This document shows, piece after piece, positions 42,847-56,842 of a stretch of 64,000 nucleotides of DNA. Position 1 is the stretch's first letter. Each line of letters starts with the position of its first letter. The position numbers were made by a program, and so were the translations under genes. Under the pieces are notes generated by a model that searched no databases, was not told the origin of the DNA, and saw only the letters and a program-made list of their open reading frames with translations. The stretch spans positions 9,486,001-9,550,000 of the forward strand of contig CM106585.1 in NCBI GenBank assembly GCA_048013815.1, written 5' to 3'. This stretch comes from Setoptus koraiensis. Lineage: Eukaryota > Animalia > Arthropoda.

Positions 42847-43442
42847 ATGTCCAACTATCACACACTGGTATTCTTTTTATTATCTTGTGGATCCATGTGG
42901 CCACCGTATCGAATATAAGTTTTGCCACTATAGATTCATTTAGGAAGAGGCATTTCTTCAGGTTACCCTGGCGATGCAGAATGTAATAGCCAATGAGATT
43001 GCAAAACCGCTCCAATTAATCATTGATGAACGGAACAAACAATCGAACAATCAGAAAGTGATGATCCAAGGATGCTCATTTCACGTGGAAAACTGTTCAA
43101 TTATATTTTTTGTAAATGACGATCCACCGGTTTCTACCAAAGAAACCTGACACTGTGCTGTTCTCTGTCAAAACTAGCGATCTCGATGAATTCAAACTAC
43201 AAATCAGTAGTTGAATTTATCAATTAATGAATCGGCTGTGCTGTCCATATTCAGCTTTATACACTTACTGAGTTTATTATCCGTCAATCATAAATTCAAA
43301 TTCAGCTAACTACTGAGTTATTGAATGGTATATCATCAGCATGATTTCTGCTTTAGAATTCCGAAGTTTATACCATTCCTTTTAATAAAATTTGGCAGCT
43401 CTTCTGTCCATTGTAATGTACCGTTTTCTGTTCTTTAGAGTT
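42847..43442 (+). pseudogene. Collinear mosaic of decayed fragments of ABCA, TMEM161 and the UROS 3-prime end
   Basis: Matches in order to 47257-47615, 50876-51095 (29-nt identical run 43159-43187 = 50896-50924) and 56632-56760 (26-nt identical run 43319-43344 = 56640-56665). Confidence 0.9.
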
Positions 43443-44349: not shown

Positions 44350-47300
44350 ATGGCTTCGGATCAGTGCAACTCAAGCAAAGTCGCCAATCCTGATACAAAT
44401 GTATTCTGGTCACAATACAAGATACTATTGTGGAAATTGATTGTCACAGCAAAACGATCCTACCAAAAAACCTTATTCAGTGCACTGAGCCCTCTGGCTG
44501 TGATTCTATGTTTCCGATGGACATTCTACAATCCGCTAGAGCCGCCAAACACTTGTTACACAATGGTGGTGATACCCCCATTTATAACTTTGGACATTTT
44601 CACTTCATTTGGTTATTTACTTCACATTAGTATGATTGTGAGCCGACTGGCCGGGGAGCACTATCATCAACAACAAACACTGCTATTTGTGATGGGCTCC
44701 AAGAGATCTGCCTACTATTTGGCAAATATTTCATTCGATTTAGTTCACACAACATTATTGGCACTCTACATGGCTGTTGGATTGCGCTACATAATATTGA
44801 TTTGTTCTTCGTTGAGCCTCATTGTGCTCACTTACCTGTTGCACGGAATTCAATCAGTAGCCTTCTCCTATTTTCTTAGTATGTTCAGGTGCAAAAGAGG
44901 CGATTCACCTACGCAACCATCAACATTGATCACATTGAGCATACTTATCTGGTTCATCAGCAAAACGATAAGAGTGGCTGCCGAGTTTGAATTGGGTGTA
45001 CCAAGCGACGATTGGGTGCATGTAGTAAGCTTCATTAATTGCATGCTACCCCAGACTGCACTGTTTCAAATTAATCCAGCTATAGTAGGTAATCCTGACC
45101 TATCACTGGCAAAAGTATTTCGGCTTACCCACCGACGCTCTCTACCGGTAGGTTATATTTGGCTATCGATGATATTCTCATCTGTTTTCTTCATAATGGG
45201 CTCTTGGTACTCAATTCTTAGTTCTGGAGTTGGCTCCAATGTACACGATTGCGCCTTACGCCAATGTACAACTAAGATAGGCCGATGCCTGAAGAAGACA
45301 TTTGCCTCGATTTGTTCGTTCTGCTCTTCTACGGAGCCAACACTGGACCCTGGCAGGGTGGAAAGTGATGGATCTTCAGCAGAGAGAGGAGTTAGAGATT
45401 TACTTGAAATATTTCACTCGGGATGCCTACAAGAGCCCGAACCCATCGGACAATTGGAGCCAGGTATAACAATCAGGGGAGTAACAAAATATTATGACAG
45501 AACAGAGCCGCCTGTTGTCGACAATTTGTCACTGACCGTTTACAAAGGCCAGACTACTATCTTGTTGGGACACAATGGTGCGGGCAAGACAACTCTCATG
45601 AAAATGATAATTGGCTTGCTGGATTTTGATGAAGGCTCGGTAACAATATCAGGTGGTCACAGTATCCAGAGTCAGCGTCAATTGGCGCGTCTATCGCTAG
45701 GATACTGTCCTCAGATGAGTATCACCTTCGATAACATGACTGTAGAAGAGCATCTGAGACTGTTCTGTGGCATAAAAGGTATCACAGAATCTGAGCTGAT
45801 CAAAACAACATGCCAATCTGTATTAGCTGGGGTTAAACTGAGCGAAAAGAGTGACAATTTAGTTAGCGAACTCTCAGGTGGGATGGTGCGAAAATTGAGC
45901 TTGGCCATCGCTCTGATAGGCAGAAAACAACAGGTTCTTGTATTAGACGAACCGAGCTCTGGTTTAGATCCAGAATCGCGCGAATCTATTTGGCAAATTG
46001 TTCAGCATTATGGCCAACAAAGGGCAATATTGATCACTACCCAGCACATGGAGGAAGCAGATAACCTTGGGGATCGTATAGCTATAATGTCACGCGGAAA
46101 AATTGTTTGTTCGGGATCAGGTGTGTTTCTCAAGGAACGATTCGGAAGTGGTTACGTTGTTCGTTTAGGGCTCAAAGATGACATTAAAAAAGAGACTCGG
46201 GAGAAAATTTTAGGATTCATGAGAGAGGCTCTGGCTAGTTCATCGCGATACCAACAGATCAACAACAGAGACGAGGAGTTGAGACAAAAATTACACACCA
46301 TAGTCAAACAGATTACTCTGAGAGACACTGGCCTCGTAACGACAGGTGATGGACTTGAAAATTCATCGTTGAATGATGACACTCTTGACATGATCTTGCC
46401 AATTGAAGCTCTCGAAAAGCTGGAGAACAGTGAGTTACTTGCCGGGATTGATTATGAGGGTTTCTTCAAACAACTCGAGAAGAATCAGGTCACTTTGGGA
46501 ATTGAATCGTTTGGAATCACCAGCTCATCTATGGAGGATGTTTTTAACAATATAAGCTCTATGGCCAATAAATTGCCTGCTAATTACAATATAGATGAAA
46601 GCAGACGAGCGAGGGCTTCTCAGAAGAGCAACAGAGAATCTTTGAAGAAGGACTTGAATTTCAGCATGGAGCATTACCGGTATAAAGATAGTGATAGAGA
46701 CAGATCAAGTGTTAATTGGAAACACATCAAAGCCACAATCTTAAGGCATTTGATTATTTTGAGAAACACTTGGCAATCATATCTGGCAATGAGATTCTTC
46801 TATTTCGTATTGGTCTACATGTTGGTTGTGGTGCTAACCCGCGTCCGAGTTAGACCACATCCAATATTGCGCAAGAAGATAGTCACTTACACTATATACA
46901 CCTGTGTTCCGTTTATTTTGCCCTTCATGGTGTCGCATTATGTTCAATTGTCCAACAAAGACAAAAGGCAAGACGGAAGCAAATTTATACAACATATGAT
47001 GGGACTGCACCCCGCAATCTACTGGTCGGTGCAATATTTTTACGACTCTTTCAGCATGATACTCAATGGACTAATACTTGTTGTAACGATATGGTTCTTC
47101 GATTTTACGGAACCATTTTTTGATATTGACTTCACGTCGAGCATCAACATTTGGCTCTCATTTGCTATTCTAGTTATGCTATTCTCATCTGGTTCCGCCC
47201 TTCTCAGTTACTCAATATCTGGATATTTTTCAACGCCATCTGGGGCAGTTATGGCTATGTCCATCTATCACACATTGGCATTCTTTTTGTCTTGTGGAGC

Positions 47301-49026
47301 CATTTTGTTTCAGCAACAAGGACATAGAACTTACAACAATTATCTTCGTGTGACGACCCTATTAAATCCAGGTTTTGCCATCACGGATGCTTTTAGAAAG
47401 CTATACGACTCCGCCACTGTGTACAAGGGCGAAGATCTCTCGAGCTACACTGGCTCAATAGAAAATGAAATAGCCAATGAGATTGCGAAACCGTTTCAAT
47501 TCATATTCGACAGACAAAACAAACTAATTGAACAATCAGAAAGTGATGATCCTGACGATTACATTCCCGCTGACAAGGATGTTCAGTTCAGAGGAAAACT
47601 GTTCAGCTATAATATTCAAAATGGACTCTGGATAAATGCTACCAGCTTGGTTTTGTACAATTTGTTTGCATTAACGCTGCTAGTAATGGATGAACATGGC
47701 TACAATCTGCTTGGCAATTGGCTGGGAAATATCAAGAAAGTTCTTCATTGCAATAGCAACTCAGTCAATCGCAAAAACCAAACAGTCTCACACTCCGCGA
47801 CAATCCCAATGCAAAGGTTATCTATTTCAGTGGACAACAGTGTACACGTAGAGAAGTTGAGGGCACACACTTTGATCTATCAACAAAATAAACATCAGGA
47901 TCGCTCGGCGGCCTTGGTGGTGTCAGAGTTAAGTAAATCTTTTAAGGAATTTGTAGCTGTTGATGGTCTCTCGATGGTACTCAATCAAAGCGAATGTTTC
48001 GGACTATTAGGCATCAATGGAGCAGGAAAAACAACCAGCTTCTCTATGATCTGTACCAAAGTGAGAAAAGACGGGGGTCAAATGGAATGTTTCACTTTTG
48101 ACTCAGTCGATCAATTGAAATTATATCGCAAGCAGATTGGCTATGATCCACAATCTAGCACAAGATTTTACGATCTCACCTGTTGGCAAACATTGTATCA
48201 TGTTGCGTTGTTGCGTGGAATGAAAGAGGAAAAAATTGAAGAGGCCATAGAGGCGCTGCTGACCTCGTTTGATATGAAGATACACACAAACAAACGTATG
48301 GATCAATTGTCTGGCGGTACCCAAAGAAAGCTCAGTTTGGCTATAGCAATGATTTGTACACCACCTGTTTTGATATTGGACGAACCAACTGCTGGCATTG
48401 ATCCTCTGTCGAGAAGATCCATTTGGCATTGTATCACCAAATGTAAAAAGTTACACAATTGCTCTATAGTAATATCATCGCATGCTATGGAGGAATGCGA
48501 AGCAATTTGTGATAGAATTGGTTTGATGGCTAGAGGGAAACTTCACTCAGTAGGTTCGTTCCAGCAACTGAGGAAGAAGTATAGCCAAGGCTATGTAATA
48601 CGTGTACAATTCACCAATCAAAACTACAATCTTGTTGTGGGTCCGCGCGAACATTTTGACTCGGTCTTGACGATCGGCGACCGGAACCAATCATATCTAG
48701 CAAGTAATCAATCAAGAAGGTCGTTAGGACAAGTTGACACAAAGAGATCACTCGATATCGCGGAGAGCAAGGCTGAGCTAACGAAATATCTTGAGTCAAT
48801 TACGAATGATATACAAATTGATTACACTAATGTAAACTCAATTGTATACAGGGTAAACGATCCCAATATAAATAGATCTACTCTATTCAATTGGATGGAG
48901 AGTGCCAAATCAAAATTAAAAGGCGTTAATTTTTCTTATCTTCTAAGTGATACAAGTTTGGAGGATGTATTTCTAACATTTGCCAAAGGTGTTGACGGAA
49001 AGTCCCATCAGTCGAGATTATCATGA
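44350..49026 (+). CDS. ABCA-subfamily full transporter, intronless, 1558 aa
   Basis: TMD-NBD-TMD-NBD layout. NBD1 has GHNGAGKT, LGYCPQ, LSGGMVRKL, LDEP. NBD2 has GINGAGKT, LSGGTQRKL, LDEPTAGIDP, SSHAMEECE. SLEDVF regulatory motif. Confidence 0.95.
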   Translation: MASDQCNSSKVANPDTNVFWSQYKILLWKLIVTAKRSYQKTLFSALSPLAVILCFRWTFYNPLEPPNTCYTMVVIPPFITLDIFTSFGYLLHISMIVSRLAGEHYHQQQTLLFVMGSKRSAYYLANISFDLVHTTLLALYMAVGLRYIILICSSLSLIVLTYLLHGIQSVAFSYFLSMFRCKRGDSPTQPSTLITLSILIWFISKTIRVAAEFELGVPSDDWVHVVSFINCMLPQTALFQINPAIVGNPDLSLAKVFRLTHRRSLPVGYIWLSMIFSSVFFIMGSWYSILSSGVGSNVHDCALRQCTTKIGRCLKKTFASICSFCSSTEPTLDPGRVESDGSSAERGVRDLLEIFHSGCLQEPEPIGQLEPGITIRGVTKYYDRTEPPVVDNLSLTVYKGQTTILLGHNGAGKTTLMKMIIGLLDFDEGSVTISGGHSIQSQRQLARLSLGYCPQMSITFDNMTVEEHLRLFCGIKGITESELIKTTCQSVLAGVKLSEKSDNLVSELSGGMVRKLSLAIALIGRKQQVLVLDEPSSGLDPESRESIWQIVQHYGQQRAILITTQHMEEADNLGDRIAIMSRGKIVCSGSGVFLKERFGSGYVVRLGLKDDIKKETREKILGFMREALASSSRYQQINNRDEELRQKLHTIVKQITLRDTGLVTTGDGLENSSLNDDTLDMILPIEALEKLENSELLAGIDYEGFFKQLEKNQVTLGIESFGITSSSMEDVFNNISSMANKLPANYNIDESRRARASQKSNRESLKKDLNFSMEHYRYKDSDRDRSSVNWKHIKATILRHLIILRNTWQSYLAMRFFYFVLVYMLVVVLTRVRVRPHPILRKKIVTYTIYTCVPFILPFMVSHYVQLSNKDKRQDGSKFIQHMMGLHPAIYWSVQYFYDSFSMILNGLILVVTIWFFDFTEPFFDIDFTSSINIWLSFAILVMLFSSGSALLSYSISGYFSTPSGAVMAMSIYHTLAFFLSCGAILFQQQGHRTYNNYLRVTTLLNPGFAITDAFRKLYDSATVYKGEDLSSYTGSIENEIANEIAKPFQFIFDRQNKLIEQSESDDPDDYIPADKDVQFRGKLFSYNIQNGLWINATSLVLYNLFALTLLVMDEHGYNLLGNWLGNIKKVLHCNSNSVNRKNQTVSHSATIPMQRLSISVDNSVHVEKLRAHTLIYQQNKHQDRSAALVVSELSKSFKEFVAVDGLSMVLNQSECFGLLGINGAGKTTSFSMICTKVRKDGGQMECFTFDSVDQLKLYRKQIGYDPQSSTRFYDLTCWQTLYHVALLRGMKEEKIEEAIEALLTSFDMKIHTNKRMDQLSGGTQRKLSLAIAMICTPPVLILDEPTAGIDPLSRRSIWHCITKCKKLHNCSIVISSHAMEECEAICDRIGLMARGKLHSVGSFQQLRKKYSQGYVIRVQFTNQNYNLVVGPREHFDSVLTIGDRNQSYLASNQSRRSLGQVDTKRSLDIAESKAELTKYLESITNDIQIDYTNVNSIVYRVNDPNINRSTLFNWMESAKSKLKGVNFSYLLSDTSLEDVFLTFAKGVDGKSHQSRLS

Positions 49027-50546: not shown

Positions 50547-52199
50547 ATGCCTCTATTGGGCTCATCCATCTATCAGCTCCTATTAGCTTTTGTATCTGCT
50601 AGCATTTTGCACAAGTTAACCTATGATTACGCATTTTTGAAATGGCTCTCGTCCCGCAAGTAAGTATTCCTGATCGCAACACTAACCACAATATTAGCCA
50701 ATCAAAGTAAAGATATAAATTATTAATTATCTTTCCACATAAAATCTATATAAACATCCAGACTGGTCTGCTATCTCAGCCCATCAGACAGCGAACTCAA
50801 GAGTCTACAATCAAAAGTTCCCAAGGCAGACCACAACAACTGGAGCGGTAGTAAAAAGCGCCATAAGAAACACAACAAGGAACCCGACACGAAAGTGTTC
50901 TCTGTCAAAACTAGCGATCTCGATAAACTCAAACTTCAAACGACATCAATCAAATCAAAAGATTTGGAATTGTTGCCATGCTCCTTGGAGCTGGAATGGA
51001 TAGTCGATTTAGCTGTAATGTCTATATTCAGCTATGTACTTACTGAGATACAGTTTTATTATTATCCGCCGTCAACCAATCAGTACAACTTTAGCCTCTT
51101 TTGGGCAGCATTAGTCATCATATGTAGCATCAGAACTTTAAGCAAATTTACGTGGCTCTATTTCAGAATGCAGGAGCTAATAGGCGAGAGGTCCGTATGT
51201 ATCATATCAGCTTGCTTATTTTTACTCATATCGATGGTGCTGTTGATAGTAGATGAAAGCAAATTAGAATTTGGAATTGAGACTGCTTACAGGTCATTCA
51301 ACTCGTCGGCCTCACGATACGTCATGAATCATGAATACTTGTCGAAACCGGTCTCATTAATCATGATTAAGTTTACTCTGGCATTGTGTTGTACAATTCT
51401 GGGAGCATTGTTTACATTTCCCGGACTACGTTTTGGTCAGATGCAAGGAGGTCTTATAGAGTCGCACGAGAGAACACCGGTGACTCTATTTGTGTATCAT
51501 GCTAACTATCTCAACTCCCTTATCATTTTGATGCTCTGGATAAAACCATTGACCCGAGACCTTCTGACCAATCCCAATCGAGCATCATATATACTAAGCG
51601 ACGAAAACTTTGACACTTTCAGAATATACTATATGATATTCGCGTGCTTATTTAGGTTCTTTTTATTACCCAGTTATTTGAATACTTATCTGAAGTTGGT
51701 GGAATCGAAAATAACAACAATGAAGCGATCAAAAGACACCATGCCAAACACTTCGATTCAAGAGATGATAGCACAGATTTACTCATACATCAATATCGTT
51801 GCCATCCAATATACACTTCCTGTTTTCATGTGCCTGTTCTCTGCTATCATGTTTAAAAATTTGGGAGGTTATTCATGGTTTTTCCAACAATCTCATCGGA
51901 CGAATCACACTTTAGTGGCCAATAATTTTAGCGTGACTTACGACAGAGGCTCTCTGAATCATGGTGGTGACAGTCTCGTAGGGCCAGGGGGCAGTGATCC
52001 TGAGACTCTAACATTAAGTGAGGGTAGCAGTTTTTTCGGCCACGACCTAGCAGTCGATTTCAATGATTTTAAGAGCATATTTTCGCCCGAAGTATTTCGT
52101 GGACTGTTGGGCTTTTGTAATTGGTGGTTACATTTTGTTTGGTTTTGTACCAGCTCGATAGGTCTAGTGTATCACACAAAATTTTCTGCTAGTGCATAA
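50547..52199 (+). CDS. TMEM161: Transmembrane protein 161 family; intron 50660-50761
   Basis: Exon 1 MPLLGSSIYQLLLAFVSASILHKL splices to KLVCYLSPSDSELK; LEWIVDLAV, GERSVCI, FTFPGLRFGQM, AIQY, WWLHFVWFCTS. Confidence 0.9.
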
Positions 52200-52298
52200 G
52201 TTTAGGTACCAATATTTGTAATAAAAGAAATAAAATGAGACAGCCGTTTTGTCCGTCAGAAACCGTTATCTATCGTTAATCTATTATCTGAGTTCTGG

Positions 52299-52343
52299 CC
52301 TTCAGAGTCTGAACTTCAGACTCTGAACTTCAGAGTCTGAAGG
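52299..52343. repeat. Three tandem 14-bp quasi-palindromic units (CTTCAGA[G/C]TCTGAA)
   Basis: Units at 52300-52313, 52314-52327 and 52328-52341, read directly. Confidence 0.95.
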
Positions 52344-52728
52344 GAATATGGCCGGAACACGACCAAACAAACATGGAGGATCTGAAACATTGACACGCCT
52401 ATTTATCGACCCGCTTTTTCATCGTTCGTTGTCGGTAGGTTGTGAGTTATCAGTGCCAGCTAATCAGCCAAATTCCGGCCGCAACTCATTCCGCCTCGCT
52501 ACCCCACCTGCCCACTCTTATAAGCGGTTTATCGACGGGCCGAGGCGTCCCCCAAAGCCGTCGGTCGGAGCCCATTTTTACAAATATCTGGGCACCGATG
52601 CATAACTCATTCTACGTGACTATTACTCATTGGGTAGGACCGTCGATGTTTATTCGTGGTCGATATTAATTTGTCGTCGACGTTCATTTGCCGTCGATGT
52701 TTGTTCGCCCCGCGATGTACGGTTGCGA

Positions 52729-52796
52729 CGATGTTTCGGGGTAGTCGATGATTCGGGGCAGTCGATGTCTCGGGGCAATCGATGTCTCGGGAGTCG
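52729..52796. repeat. Four tandem 17-bp units (consensus CGATGTYTCGGGGCAGT)
   Basis: Units start at 52729, 52746, 52763 and 52780, with additional GTCGATGTTT copies upstream. Confidence 0.9.
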
Positions 52797-53310
52797 GGCC
52801 GTGTCGGGACGCCAGACGGCCGCCAGACACAGTCCCGTCTGAACCGTGTCTGGCGCTTGTCTGGCGCTTGCCTGGAGTGTGTGATAGCAATCTTTTGTGT
52901 TGTCTGCAAAACTGCATTTTACGCAGCCACCGATTCACTGGCTCTATAGATGGAATGACGAAAGTGCCACCCCGCCCCCTCCCCCCCCTCTTTTTGTGTT
53001 TGAATCTCGCTTCGCTTTCGTGTTTCCGGACAAACAAATGGGAAAATTTCGGGTATGGAGTTACAAAAGCTTTTATAGGTAAATTTTAAACCGAGATGCG
53101 GCAAGAAAGATGCGTGGTGCTGGATATTTGAATTGATAACGGACAGGCAAACGGTGCACAACGACGCTCAAGGCGGTAGACGAGCAGCGTCCATCCGGGC
53201 AGAATTGTCCGCAAGTTCCCGCTAACGGTTGCAGTGAATATTTTGTCGAGAGACATTGGCAGACAAAGAAATCCAATAAAATAAAATCACATCACATCGC
53301 ATCGCATTAG

Positions 53311-53437: not shown

Positions 53438-55585
53438 ATGAACCAACAGAATCGAAGAAAAATGAACGACAGCAATTTGCAGGAACGTCGCTACAACATA
53501 GAACTGCCAGTAGACATTTGGCTCTGTATCATCGACAGAGTGAAAGATATAACACCGGGAGATTTGATACGACTGGCGCAAGTTTCCAGGGCCACCTATT
53601 GGGCAGTTCGAGAGCATTGTCGACGCTTAAATGTTCTCTCGTTTGCTAAATACAGCCCAAGGTCACTGGTTCTCGAAGATATTGAGTCAGTGTTCGAGAA
53701 ATGTCCGAACCTAACTCACTTAAACTTGAGCGGAATCAAACGATTTGGATTCGAAATGCATCGCGTTATCACAGACCGCTGCAAGAATGTCGTTAGCCTA
53801 GATTTATCTGGAATATCGTTCGTCAGACAAGAGCTCACTTTTTTGGTATCAAAATGCGACAAAGTCACCTCATTGGTATTGGACGATATTATTGTGGAGA
53901 ACAAGTATGAAATAATTGATGTGATTAAGATGTGTAGGACAAGGTTGCGTCACCTCAGTTTGCACAATGTAGATTCTTATTTAAGACCGGACGAAAATTT
54001 TGAAAAAAGTGAAAAATATGTCTTGGAATCCCTCATCATTGGCAATTACTACAACATTTGCCAAAAGTTTTGTCGACAATTTGTCGTATGTTGCCCAGAT
54101 ATTGAATCTTTGTCAGTTAAAACCGAAATGAGTATAAGTTTACGCTTCGACCAATTGGAAACGTGTTCCATACTTGCTGCCAATTGTCCAAAACTTTTAC
54201 AGCCCCGAGATACACCTGCCAGTTTACACTCGAGAATATTTTCTGACTACAACTATACACAATCAACGCTTTCAAACGAAGAGCCCAAACATATACTAAA
54301 GATATGTCAATTAGGCGAAATTGGCAGTCACTATTCTGTAACCGCAAACTACTACCAGCAAAGAGTAAAAGTTTTTTACAGGCGGGAAATGGAAGGTTTA
54401 TATGCAAAAGTGAGGTATCGATCTCTAAATCAATCACTTTGCCGCAATTTGCGACCTGGAGACGCGGTTAAATTATCTGCTTCAAGTACTTCGTGTTTCT
54501 ATCTCAATGGTATCATCATTGGTAAGAAAGATTTTGACAATAATGAAGATTACGATGGATCTTATGTGTATATTGTGTCAGCTTACATCGACAAAATCGA
54601 TGCTAGCATGTTTTCTGAAGATGAAATGAGAATATGTTATCTAGACTTCACTTTAGTAACTCATGAGGAAATCATGGAGTCTTCGTTCTGCAGTGTCTTG
54701 TTCAATGAGAGATTGAGAAGAAATGCTCTGACATTTTTACTAATGGATAATTTATTGTCCGATACAATACTTACCAAACACAATATTTCGCCCACGATTG
54801 CCAGGAGAAATGTATTGAAATACAACAAGAACTATAACCGCAATGATCTCATCAACATTAACAACCTACACATAAGCCAGCAAGATGCCATTATTCATGC
54901 ATTAACCCACAGAATAACGATAATCGAACATCCTGGTGGCGATTGTAAATTGTCAACTGTTGCATCACTCGTTAACAATCTATTTCGCACTAGAAGCTAT
55001 GAAAAAGATAAGGTATTGATCTGTTCGCTGGATCCGGCTAGTATAGCTGACGAAATCTATGGAAAGAATGAGTTGAGAGTGGTCACTTATCGTTCTCAGT
55101 ACAAAATAGACGAAAACGATCTGAAATCTCATTATGCAGAATGCATCCTGCTAAAGTTACCTGTGTTATTTCCGGCATTTAATACAAATTTACCGACACC
55201 TTTACAACTTTCAAAGCTCAACAGCGAACAGAGAAGACGTTGGCATGAATATATAATGTCTTGCATTGGAAAAATTATCGAGGCTTCGGATGTCATTTGT
55301 AGCTCAGTGGGAAATGCTGTCGAATTGCTGACGAGGTTCGAGCAGACTAGAATCGATTCGCTCATAATTGACCACAGTGACTATGTGATGGTATCAGAGA
55401 TGATACGACTTTTGAGATACCCACCGAAAAGAATTATATTATTGCACTCAGAGGGTTGTGATATATTAGGACTAGAAAAAATTGATGGACAAGAATCTAT
55501 ATACGTTAAACTAATTAGTATGGGTTTCGTGCCAAAATTGATCTCATTAAATGATTTATTAATTAGTCTAAAGTATAATCAGTGA
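53438..55585 (+). CDS. F-box plus LRR protein fused to a degenerate UPF1-like (SF1B) helicase domain, intronless, 715 aa
   Basis: F-box ELPVDIWLCII..DLIRLAQVSR. AMN1-type LRRs (CPNLTHLNLSG, CKNVVSLDLSG, CDKVTSLVLD). The C-terminal half follows the UPF1 motif order: LHISQQDAI..ITIIEHPGGDCKLS..KVLICS..SDVICSSV..LIIDHS..KRIILL. Confidence 0.72.
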   Translation: MNQQNRRKMNDSNLQERRYNIELPVDIWLCIIDRVKDITPGDLIRLAQVSRATYWAVREHCRRLNVLSFAKYSPRSLVLEDIESVFEKCPNLTHLNLSGIKRFGFEMHRVITDRCKNVVSLDLSGISFVRQELTFLVSKCDKVTSLVLDDIIVENKYEIIDVIKMCRTRLRHLSLHNVDSYLRPDENFEKSEKYVLESLIIGNYYNICQKFCRQFVVCCPDIESLSVKTEMSISLRFDQLETCSILAANCPKLLQPRDTPASLHSRIFSDYNYTQSTLSNEEPKHILKICQLGEIGSHYSVTANYYQQRVKVFYRREMEGLYAKVRYRSLNQSLCRNLRPGDAVKLSASSTSCFYLNGIIIGKKDFDNNEDYDGSYVYIVSAYIDKIDASMFSEDEMRICYLDFTLVTHEEIMESSFCSVLFNERLRRNALTFLLMDNLLSDTILTKHNISPTIARRNVLKYNKNYNRNDLININNLHISQQDAIIHALTHRITIIEHPGGDCKLSTVASLVNNLFRTRSYEKDKVLICSLDPASIADEIYGKNELRVVTYRSQYKIDENDLKSHYAECILLKLPVLFPAFNTNLPTPLQLSKLNSEQRRRWHEYIMSCIGKIIEASDVICSSVGNAVELLTRFEQTRIDSLIIDHSDYVMVSEMIRLLRYPPKRIILLHSEGCDILGLEKIDGQESIYVKLISMGFVPKLISLNDLLISLKYNQ

Positions 55586-55744
55586 TAGTACGTAATATCA
55601 ACAACTACTAGTTGATCCGCCAACTCAGGACTATGGAGATAAAACATGTTGATAAAGCACAGCTGTACACTGATTGTATAAACACTCAAGCATCACACCA
55701 TATGAATTGAATTCGACGAGGCACTTTTGTATCTATTTTTTATC

Positions 55745-56665
55745 ATGCAGACAGACACTAGGAAATCAAAATGGATCCATCTATTATTTCGTGGTGATAA
55801 AGATGATTTTATAGGACTAAATTCTCCAGAAGATGATTATACAAGAGAATTCATCTCAATCAATCATTTGTCTTTGACAATACCGTTGTTGGAATTCAAA
55901 TATATAAATCTATTGGAGTTGTACCAACTACTGGCGAAGCAAATAAGTGACAAATCATACAAATATGGACTTATATTGACTTCACCTAGAGTTGTTGAGG
56001 CTGTCAATCAGTCGTTAAATAAATTTAGTCATCTTGGGACAAGAGAAAAAATTGTTGCCGCATGGAAAACCAATGAGTCTCAGCATATATATTCTGTGGG
56101 AGAGAAAACAAGTCAAACAGCTGAAAGGGTTCTCGGAATCAAAGTCAGTAATGGATCCTCTGCAACTGGTCGCGGTTCAGAGTTAGCCAAATTTATAATC
56201 GAGGCTGTATCACCTGAGGAGTGTGATAATCTCGTTCTCATACAACCGCACGGAGATTTAGCTGACGGCACTCTCTCTCAATCTATCAAGACCCACGGAA
56301 TAAAAGTAAATTCGTTGGTTGTTTATAACAATGAACCAATACCTGAGATCCAAGATTACTTGAAGAAAGTTTTGTCGGAATTTTTGTTATCCCTTGACAA
56401 ACAATCAACCTCAATAGTACCCCTTGGTATCAACTTGATATTTTTTAGTCCATCGGGAGTGAAGTTGCTATTTCCGCATGTCAATTGGATCTTGGGGGAG
56501 CTAGAATCTTTCTTCAAAAGTGATCTTAACGTAGTGAACTCATGTATCGGACCAACGACCAGGAAGGCAATGTTAGACATAGGAATGGAAGTGTTTTGTA
56601 CATCTAGCAAGCCAAATGCTCAAACACTGATTGCTGAGATATTGAATGGTATATCATCAGCATGA
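55745..56665 (+). CDS. UROS: Uroporphyrinogen-III synthase (HemD/HEM4)
   Basis: GLILTSPRVVEA, YSVGEKT, SLVVY, IFFSPSGVK, CIGPTT, SKPNAQ. Confidence 0.9.
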   Translation: MQTDTRKSKWIHLLFRGDKDDFIGLNSPEDDYTREFISINHLSLTIPLLEFKYINLLELYQLLAKQISDKSYKYGLILTSPRVVEAVNQSLNKFSHLGTREKIVAAWKTNESQHIYSVGEKTSQTAERVLGIKVSNGSSATGRGSELAKFIIEAVSPEECDNLVLIQPHGDLADGTLSQSIKTHGIKVNSLVVYNNEPIPEIQDYLKKVLSEFLLSLDKQSTSIVPLGINLIFFSPSGVKLLFPHVNWILGELESFFKSDLNVVNSCIGPTTRKAMLDIGMEVFCTSSKPNAQTLIAEILNGISSA

Positions 56666-56842
56666 CTCTTGGTTTTATATTCTTCGTATTTAACACCACT
56701 ATTTGAAATAAACCTGACGTTTGTACTGTAGTAATTTCGTCGTTTTTCATCTTTTAGAGTTGGTAGAATATATAGAGAGTCTAGTATAAGTACTGGTATA
56801 TATGTCATTCACTTCTACAGTATCTAGTACAGTGAAAGATTT

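Follow-up and report, generated by a model that had tools for sequence, protein, structure and literature searches.

The stretch of Setoptus koraiensis DNA analyzed here (GenBank assembly GCA_048013815.1, contig CM106585.1, positions 9,486,001 to 9,550,000 of the forward strand; 64,000 nucleotides, hereafter the window) contains an F-box gene that reads as a single open reading frame (ORF) on the + strand, at 53438-55585. In the ORF listing of the window it begins with ATG and encodes 715 residues followed by a stop codon, just as an earlier note written from the sequence alone had described it. It is nearly certain that the product has a three-part architecture, namely an F-box, leucine-rich repeats (LRRs) and an ATPase-dead module resembling the helicase UPF1 that consists of the first RecA domain (RecA1) only. 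The gene is set in a compact animal genome of 39% G+C. It lies between a TMEM161AB gene upstream (50895-52199, Pfam E=2.9e-109) and a uroporphyrinogen-III synthase (UROS) gene downstream (55727-56665, Pfam E=5.5e-24), the latter beginning about 140 nt beyond its stop codon, and a rabaptin-like gene is situated on the opposite strand. No paralogue of the F-box gene was found in the 64-kb window. The features of the locus are collected in Table 1.

The gene is intact. Its base composition (G+C 0.381, GC3 0.394) is similar to that of the neighboring genes, and contigs of independent runs contain it with 0 differences and joined to those same neighbors. Because the composition is neighbor-like and the independent contigs agree, we consider the gene to be neither an assembly artefact nor contamination, and horizontal gene transfer was rejected on the same grounds. 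The four runs that hold the gene are all 100% identical to the window and so come from the same species. The lack of introns, which the earlier note had taken as a pointer to a retrocopy, proved uninformative, as the neighboring genes likewise read as long single ORFs.

Table 1. Features of the F-box gene and its product (window coordinates; identity is the mean pairwise value in the family of five proteins).
Feature	Position	Strand	Mean identity	Basis and remarks
TATAAA	53311..53316	+		127 nt upstream of the ATG; possible core promoter by consensus only, not evidence of function
Complete single-exon ORF	53438..55585	+		Start: first residues resemble P0005; end coincides with the ends of P0003, P0004 and P0005
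F-box (residues 20-66)	53495..53635	+	51.5%	Pfam, family alignment, Skp2 profile alignment
About seven cysteine-containing LRRs, FBXL/Skp2 type (residues 67-255)	53636..54202	+	41.7%	Skp2 alignment, weak Pfam LRR matches, sequence pattern
Linker and first stalk-like helix (residues 256-305)	54203..54352	+		Alignment, AF2 model (low pLDDT); S279, E281 and E282 invariant
Putative 1B-type beta-barrel (residues 306-405)	54353..54652	+	34.2%	Model, language-model features, P0052 homology
Second stalk-like helical segment (residues 406-470)	54653..54847	+	28.5% (stalk)	Model; least conserved
RecA1 (1A), first part (residues 471-545)	54848..55072	+	40.9%	HMMER, profile, Foldseek, VIA; Q motif, degenerate Walker A, motif Ia strand KVLICS partly kept
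Q-motif region LHISQQDAI (residues 477-485)	54866..54892	+		HMMER alignment to yeast Upf1
Walker A remnant HPGGDCKLS (residues 498-506)	54929..54955	+		Opposite GPPGTGKT of yeast Upf1
1C-like insertion (residues 546-612)	55073..55273	+	36.2%	Aligned to Upf1 1C region; model
RecA1 (1A), second part (residues 613-703)	55274..55546	+	37.7%	HMMER, profile, VIA; Walker B and motif III remnants
Walker B remnant IIDHS (residues 643-647)	55364..55378	+		Opposite IDES of yeast Upf1
Motif III remnant LLHSEGCDILG (residues 668-678)	55439..55471	+		Alignment, versus LVGDHQQLGP

The earlier note had treated the gene as a one-off chimera. An exhaustive HMMER search over 1.84 billion representative proteins instead recovered four full-length homologues of the same architecture (E=6.6e-82 to 1.3e-53), which are 30-35% identical to the window protein and which we aligned with it (alignment A1): P0003 (704 residues, E=6.6e-82), P0004 (721 residues), P0005 (723 residues) and P0006 (670 residues). 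All four derive from one unannotated Logan run, SRR33593474, in which they occupy four different contigs, each as one uninterrupted ORF, and the cluster look-up returned every homologue as a singleton. Word-indexed searches with the protein or A1 gave bacterial LRR proteins or nothing, a scan of JGI metagenome contigs with A1 gave no relatives, and a synteny check found neither TMEM161 nor UROS beside the homologues. From these searches the family appears to be multi-copy and confined to one fast-evolving animal lineage.

The same run contains the parts of the architecture separately. P0024 (L006:1354-2250) is a protein of 298 residues that consists of the F-box/LRR module with an acidic tail and shares 31% identity with the N-terminal part of the window protein; this module therefore exists both unfused and fused. 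P0052 (L005:892-3366) is a helicase of 824 residues; at its N-terminus it has a transmembrane helix and then a charged region, and these are followed by 1B, RecA1 and a second RecA domain (RecA2). The last of these matches AAA_12 at E=1.2e-35 and has motifs V and VI intact; Walker A of P0052 reads GPPGTGVT, with the lysine changed to valine, and Walker B reads VNES. The contig that carries P0052 also holds, at L005:3-128, the C-terminal end of another helicase that is 43% identical to residues 180-223 of the P0052 RecA2, indicating that such helicases also sit in tandem.

Within the family of five, the F-box is the most conserved region. Residues L23, P24, D26, I27, W28, C30 and I32 are invariant in all five fusion proteins, as is the core LPxDIW. 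The Pfam F-box-like model matched five of five members when these were scanned singly (best 6.9e-08), and an N-terminal family profile (A4) aligned to both the F-box and the LRRs of Skp2 (E=8.5e-05). The repeat region that follows showed Skp2 and MAX2 LRR alignments and weak Pfam matches to LRR_4, LRR_Zer-1 and LRR_FBXL18, the number of repeats being read from the sequence repeat pattern. The N-terminal F-box and several LRRs that the earlier note had recognized are thus supported by the family, the F-box of the window copy itself scoring below the Pfam threshold.

Beyond the LRRs, in its C-terminal 60%, the protein is related to UPF1. Searched alone against the PDB with HMMER, the window protein matched yeast Nam7/Upf1 at E=3.9e-07 over residues 472-702, and against Pfam it matched AAA_11 at E=6.2e-05 over residues 477-530, which is below the curated cut-off; AAA_11 matched five of five family members (best 2.6e-10). 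With the family profile built from A1, UPF1 of yeast and human was matched at E=1e-17 to 6e-17 (profile positions 471-702), and Sen1 at E=2.3e-06. There was no match to the UvrD family in the Pfam scan of the window protein.

A model of residues 255-715, made with AlphaFold2 (AF2) from an 11-row alignment (A3) that included UPF1-like rows, agrees with this assignment. It has a mean predicted local distance difference test (pLDDT) score of 61.4 and a predicted template modeling (pTM) score of 0.55, with the RecA1 blocks at pLDDT 76-87; a single-sequence AF2 run on the whole protein gave pLDDT 34. In a Foldseek search of the PDB, the top 13 matches of the model were all UPF1 (best E=4.4e-16), followed by IGHMBP2, SETX/Sen1, ZNFX1, Dna2, Aquarius and nidovirus nsp13. 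VIA-align against UPF1 gave Z=20.2, and the model core (165-450) superimposed on human UPF1 415-700 at 4.0 Å over 265 residues. These matches support an SF1 (superfamily 1) helicase fold in the C-terminal half, the absence of which the earlier note had named as refuting its reading. AlphaFold DB clusters and the ESM Atlas returned only UPF1-type helicases, none of them named as an F-box fusion.

The region between the LRRs and RecA1 is less readily recognized. A profile of residues 279-478 against the PDB and the family members against Pfam gave no significant hidden Markov model (HMM) match for it. Three other lines point to residues 256-470 as corresponding to the stalk and 1B barrel in a core of UPF1 type. 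The family profile runs continuously into the helicase P0052 over positions 261-703 (E=4e-53). The model places six beta-strands at residues ~312-403 (pLDDT 55-69), a region whose match to UPF1 starts at about residue 324, and the longer VIA alignments begin at UPF1 residue 315-325, the start of its 1B barrel. Finally, language-model features of residues 275-470 alone, a line that, unlike the model, is independent of the sequence homology, retrieved 1B-barrel family clusters at 0.89-0.94 (UPF1_1B_dom, SMUBP-2_HCS1_1B, MOV-10_beta-barrel, ZNFX1 and DUF6469). The UPF1 motif order proposed by the earlier note holds by profile homology for RecA1 (E=1e-17); its 1B-like segment has no HMM match and is a putative assignment from the fold model, the language-model features and the P0052 homology.

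The motifs that would make such a module an enzyme have been lost. The strings LHISQQDAI, HPGGDCKLS and IIDHS, to which the earlier note had drawn attention, are all present and lie opposite the corresponding elements of yeast Upf1 (Table 1). In Walker A the lysine is kept in the window copy only, its flanking glycine and threonine/serine residues being gone, and the P-loop is unrecognizable in all four homologues. The Walker B glutamate is lost throughout the family (histidine in the window copy, asparagine or serine in the other four members), and the GDxxQL sequence of motif III is degenerate in five of five. Like P0003, P0004 and P0005, the protein stops at the point where RecA1 would give way to RecA2. 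That it terminates ahead of a second RecA domain, as originally reported, agrees with the short distance to the next gene and with a tblastn search with four RecA2 queries, which found no RecA2 coding sequence in any frame of the window or of the homologue loci L001-L004. With the P-loop signature, the Walker B glutamate, motif III and RecA2 all lost, normal ATP binding or hydrolysis and translocation should not occur, and from the established mechanism of SF1 helicases we would regard ATP hydrolysis and translocation on RNA as excluded.

The half-helicase is not a captured copy of UPF1 itself, as the earlier note had supposed it might be. In a maximum-likelihood tree of the post-LRR region (unrooted and with few rows), the five fusion proteins form a clade (100/99) in which the window copy is nested, and P0052 falls on the same side as that clade, with the UPF1-like sequences on the other (100/100). 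The motifs LFxTR, KPYYLD and LPRRI are common to P0052 and the fusions and are absent from UPF1. Because of this grouping and these shared motifs, the half-helicase can be assigned to a lineage-specific UPF1-like clade from which it descends, and a retrocopy of UPF1 was rejected, P0052 being the nearest relative by both profile and tree. The CH zinc-knuckle domain (PF09416), which serves to bind UPF2 and which the true UPF1 orthologues P0153 and P0155 carry, had no Pfam match in the window protein or the family members. Of the UPF1 decoy role that the earlier note had suggested, a form acting on UPF2 or eRF binding is made unlikely by this absence.

Conservation in the family is spread over its whole length, with approximately 70 invariant columns of A1 distributed across all domains and mean identities between 51.5% for the F-box and 28.5% for the stalk (Table 1). 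The members are only 30-52% identical to each other, yet they retain long intact ORFs and the same end point, and for these reasons we argue for selection acting on the whole architecture.

Evidence for transcription is suggestive at most. In runs X4 and X5, which are of low depth and whose type was guessed, genic pieces are covered and the 1.2-kb spacer upstream of the gene is bare; runs X1 and X2 look like DNA, their contigs crossing the spacers. One X4 contig (window 55405-56568) runs from the 3′ end of the F-box gene across the 140-nt spacer into the UROS gene, most of which it covers, and neither AATAAA nor ATTAAA occurs within 315 nt downstream of the F-box gene stop codon. If X4 is RNA, this contig would mean read-through or overlapping transcripts.

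Several further observations were made on the surroundings of the gene. The spacer upstream of it is G+C-rich at 52260-53000 (0.548 at 52500-52999) and contains short tandem or palindromic repeats, namely CTTCAGAGTCTGAA units at 52299-52345 and TCGATG...TCGGGG units at 52730-52800. A 44-nt piece of this spacer (52299-52342) is a dispersed repeat that was found again in other contigs of run X1, and run X2 has 3 additional C in the poly-C tract near 52970-52990. The Pfam model for TMEM161AB is matched by the ORF at 50895-52199 only from position 82 of 485, and the mechanical ORF list gives this ORF a GTG start; its first ~80 residues probably lie on an upstream exon or in a frame extension. A "ghost" segment at 42847-43442 holds pieces of ABCA (47257-47611), of the TMEM161 5′ end (50877-51047) and of the UROS 3′ end (56634-56712), at identities ranging from 76 to 85%. 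It contains no piece of the F-box gene, though that gene sits between TMEM161 and UROS, and it cannot date the gene's arrival.

We consider it on balance probable that the protein is a substrate receptor of a Skp1-Cul1-F-box (SCF) ubiquitin ligase, with the LRRs and the dead half-helicase as its recognition end. The N-terminal F-box would dock on Skp1 of the SCF, an assembly predicted from F-box homology. The LRR solenoid and the pseudo-helicase would jointly form the substrate-recognition end, with the pseudo-helicase (RecA1/1A and the putative stalk, 1B and 1C) kept as a folded, non-enzymatic platform for binding protein or ribonucleoprotein (RNP), and whatever the pseudo-helicase holds would be ubiquitinated. 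That the half-helicase serves in binding is a prediction, as is the kind of ligand it would have. We lean towards a protein or RNP partner rather than naked RNA, because the module lacks one half of the RNA channel of UPF1, has a degraded motif Ia and is not basic.

A number of points weigh against the substrate-receptor reading. The Pfam F-box match of the window copy has E=0.03 and 14.7 bits, against a threshold of 20.5. The fold model is of moderate quality and, having been built from an alignment with UPF1-like rows, overlaps with the sequence homology as evidence. Two features of the half-helicase give no pointer to RNA binding: motif Ia has kept its KILICA strand but not its PSN residues, and the net charge of the sub-domains, at approximately -4 to +4, is not basic. 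Transcription is seen only in fragmentary contigs of runs whose type was guessed, none of those listed being labeled RNA-Seq. Moreover, the window copy has the longest branch of the fusion clade (1.62), which could mean relaxed constraint.

The last two of these points, together with the loss of the catalytic motifs, are what would be expected if the gene were a decaying relic, left by duplication and truncation of a full-length F-box-helicase gene and now drifting with no function. We judge this very improbable, as 715 codons remain free of stops in a genome of 39% G+C, genes that have diverged to the extent given above share their truncation point and dead motifs, and the invariant columns include the key F-box residues as well as positions in all other domains. 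Another reading is an F-box protein directed at RNA or RNPs that does not act mainly through the SCF, in which the module would hold mRNA or RNP and the F-box would be auto-regulatory, as in Trypanosoma brucei CFB2 (cyclin F-box protein 2). In UPF1 the RNA is enclosed with the help of the stalk, 1B and 1C, all of which appear to be kept here. However, the three points that make us lean away from naked RNA apply here also, RecA2 being the missing half of the channel, and there is no sequence relation to CFB2; we regard this possibility as distinctly unlikely.

Two other explanations turn on the relationship of the half-helicase to complete helicases. It may regulate its own relatives, competing or pairing with full-length members of the clade for a partner or RNA that they have in common and either titrating them as a dominant negative or directing their turnover by the SCF. 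The existence of the full-length P0052 of the same clade in a related organism, and the LFxTR, KPYYLD and LPRRI motifs that it has in common with the fusions and not with UPF1, are consistent with such a role. Interaction and co-expression with full-length helicases are purely conjectural, though, and SF1B helicases are typically monomeric, so that we find this explanation quite unlikely. Alternatively, the protein may be an integrated decoy in a host-parasite conflict. UPF1-like helicases restrict RNA viruses and retroelements, and the dead half-helicase would mimic such a helicase of the host, either of the P0052 type or a full-length F-box-helicase paralogue, that is attacked by a protein of a virus or transposon, the invader then being ubiquitinated via the SCF. 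In favor of this are the multi-copy and lineage-restricted nature of the family, the rapid divergence of its paralogues (30-52% identity) with the window copy on a long branch, and its lack of relatives on metagenome contigs, only one run having been found in the 1.8-billion-protein library. On the other hand, the idea is built on analogy, the proposed viral or transposon partner is hypothetical, and the F-box, LRRs and RecA1 are similarly conserved, with no hypervariable surface visible at this depth. We deem the integrated decoy unlikely, and the broader proposal that the family is an SCF-based animal counterpart of the integrated decoys of plant nucleotide-binding leucine-rich repeat (NLR) receptors, mimicking an antiviral or anti-transposon UPF1-like helicase, would on the same analogy be quite unlikely as well.

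A substrate receptor of the kind we favor would be of interest in several respects. F-box proteins are the specificity subunits of SCF ligases, and it is the substrate-binding domain that sets what the ligase sees. Half of an inactivated UPF1-type helicase in that position would be a new recognition module, and would be one of the rare RecA1-only pseudo-helicases that selection has maintained. It may also offer a way into a possible connection of ubiquitination with RNA surveillance or with the control of helicases. As one related organism has the modules on their own, their fusion and a complete helicase belonging to the same clade, the family offers a clean example of domain shuffling followed by enzymatic loss. 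The general reach of these points is limited by restriction of the family to one compact, fast-evolving animal lineage.

Among known systems, the N-terminal part of the window protein is closest to Skp2 and the FBXL proteins, with which it has in common an N-terminal F-box directly followed by cysteine-containing LRRs. FBXL proteins end with the LRR solenoid, whereas the window protein adds 460 residues of helicase-derived fold; a further difference is the sub-threshold F-box of the window copy, for which Skp1 binding is predicted. The C-terminal part has its best sequence and fold match in UPF1 (Nam7/RENT1), whose order of stalk, 1B barrel, stalk and RecA1 with 1C it appears to follow, at an identity of only ~17-23%. 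Unlike UPF1, it has no CH domain, RecA2 or SQ tail, and it has lost Walker A, the Walker B glutamate and motif III. P0052 is similar in RecA1, the putative stalk, 1B and 1C, and the family motifs and in having damaged Walker A and B motifs, but it has kept RecA2 and has a transmembrane helix and charged region in place of the F-box and LRRs.

To our knowledge, FBH1/FBXO18 is the only characterized F-box helicase. It has a complete and active UvrD-type (SF1A) DNA helicase and, as the earlier note also stated, no LRRs. The window protein differs from it in being SF1B and UPF1-like, half-length and catalytically dead. FBH1 is described as both an SCF ligase subunit and an active helicase that catalyzes fork reversal (PMC12946210). 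A precedent for F-box proteins in RNA biology is T. brucei CFB2, which acts on messenger RNPs (PMC8051951); the likeness is conceptual only, as CFB2 has no helicase-like domain, no LRRs and no sequence relation to the window protein. Helicases are not mentioned in a 2025 survey of how F-box genes capture domains (PMC12062965), and our full-text literature searches found no fusion of an F-box/LRR protein with a UPF1-like helicase, in keeping with the suggestion of the earlier note that the architecture is undescribed. Set beside these systems, we rate the window protein as an F-box adaptor with a new recognition domain.

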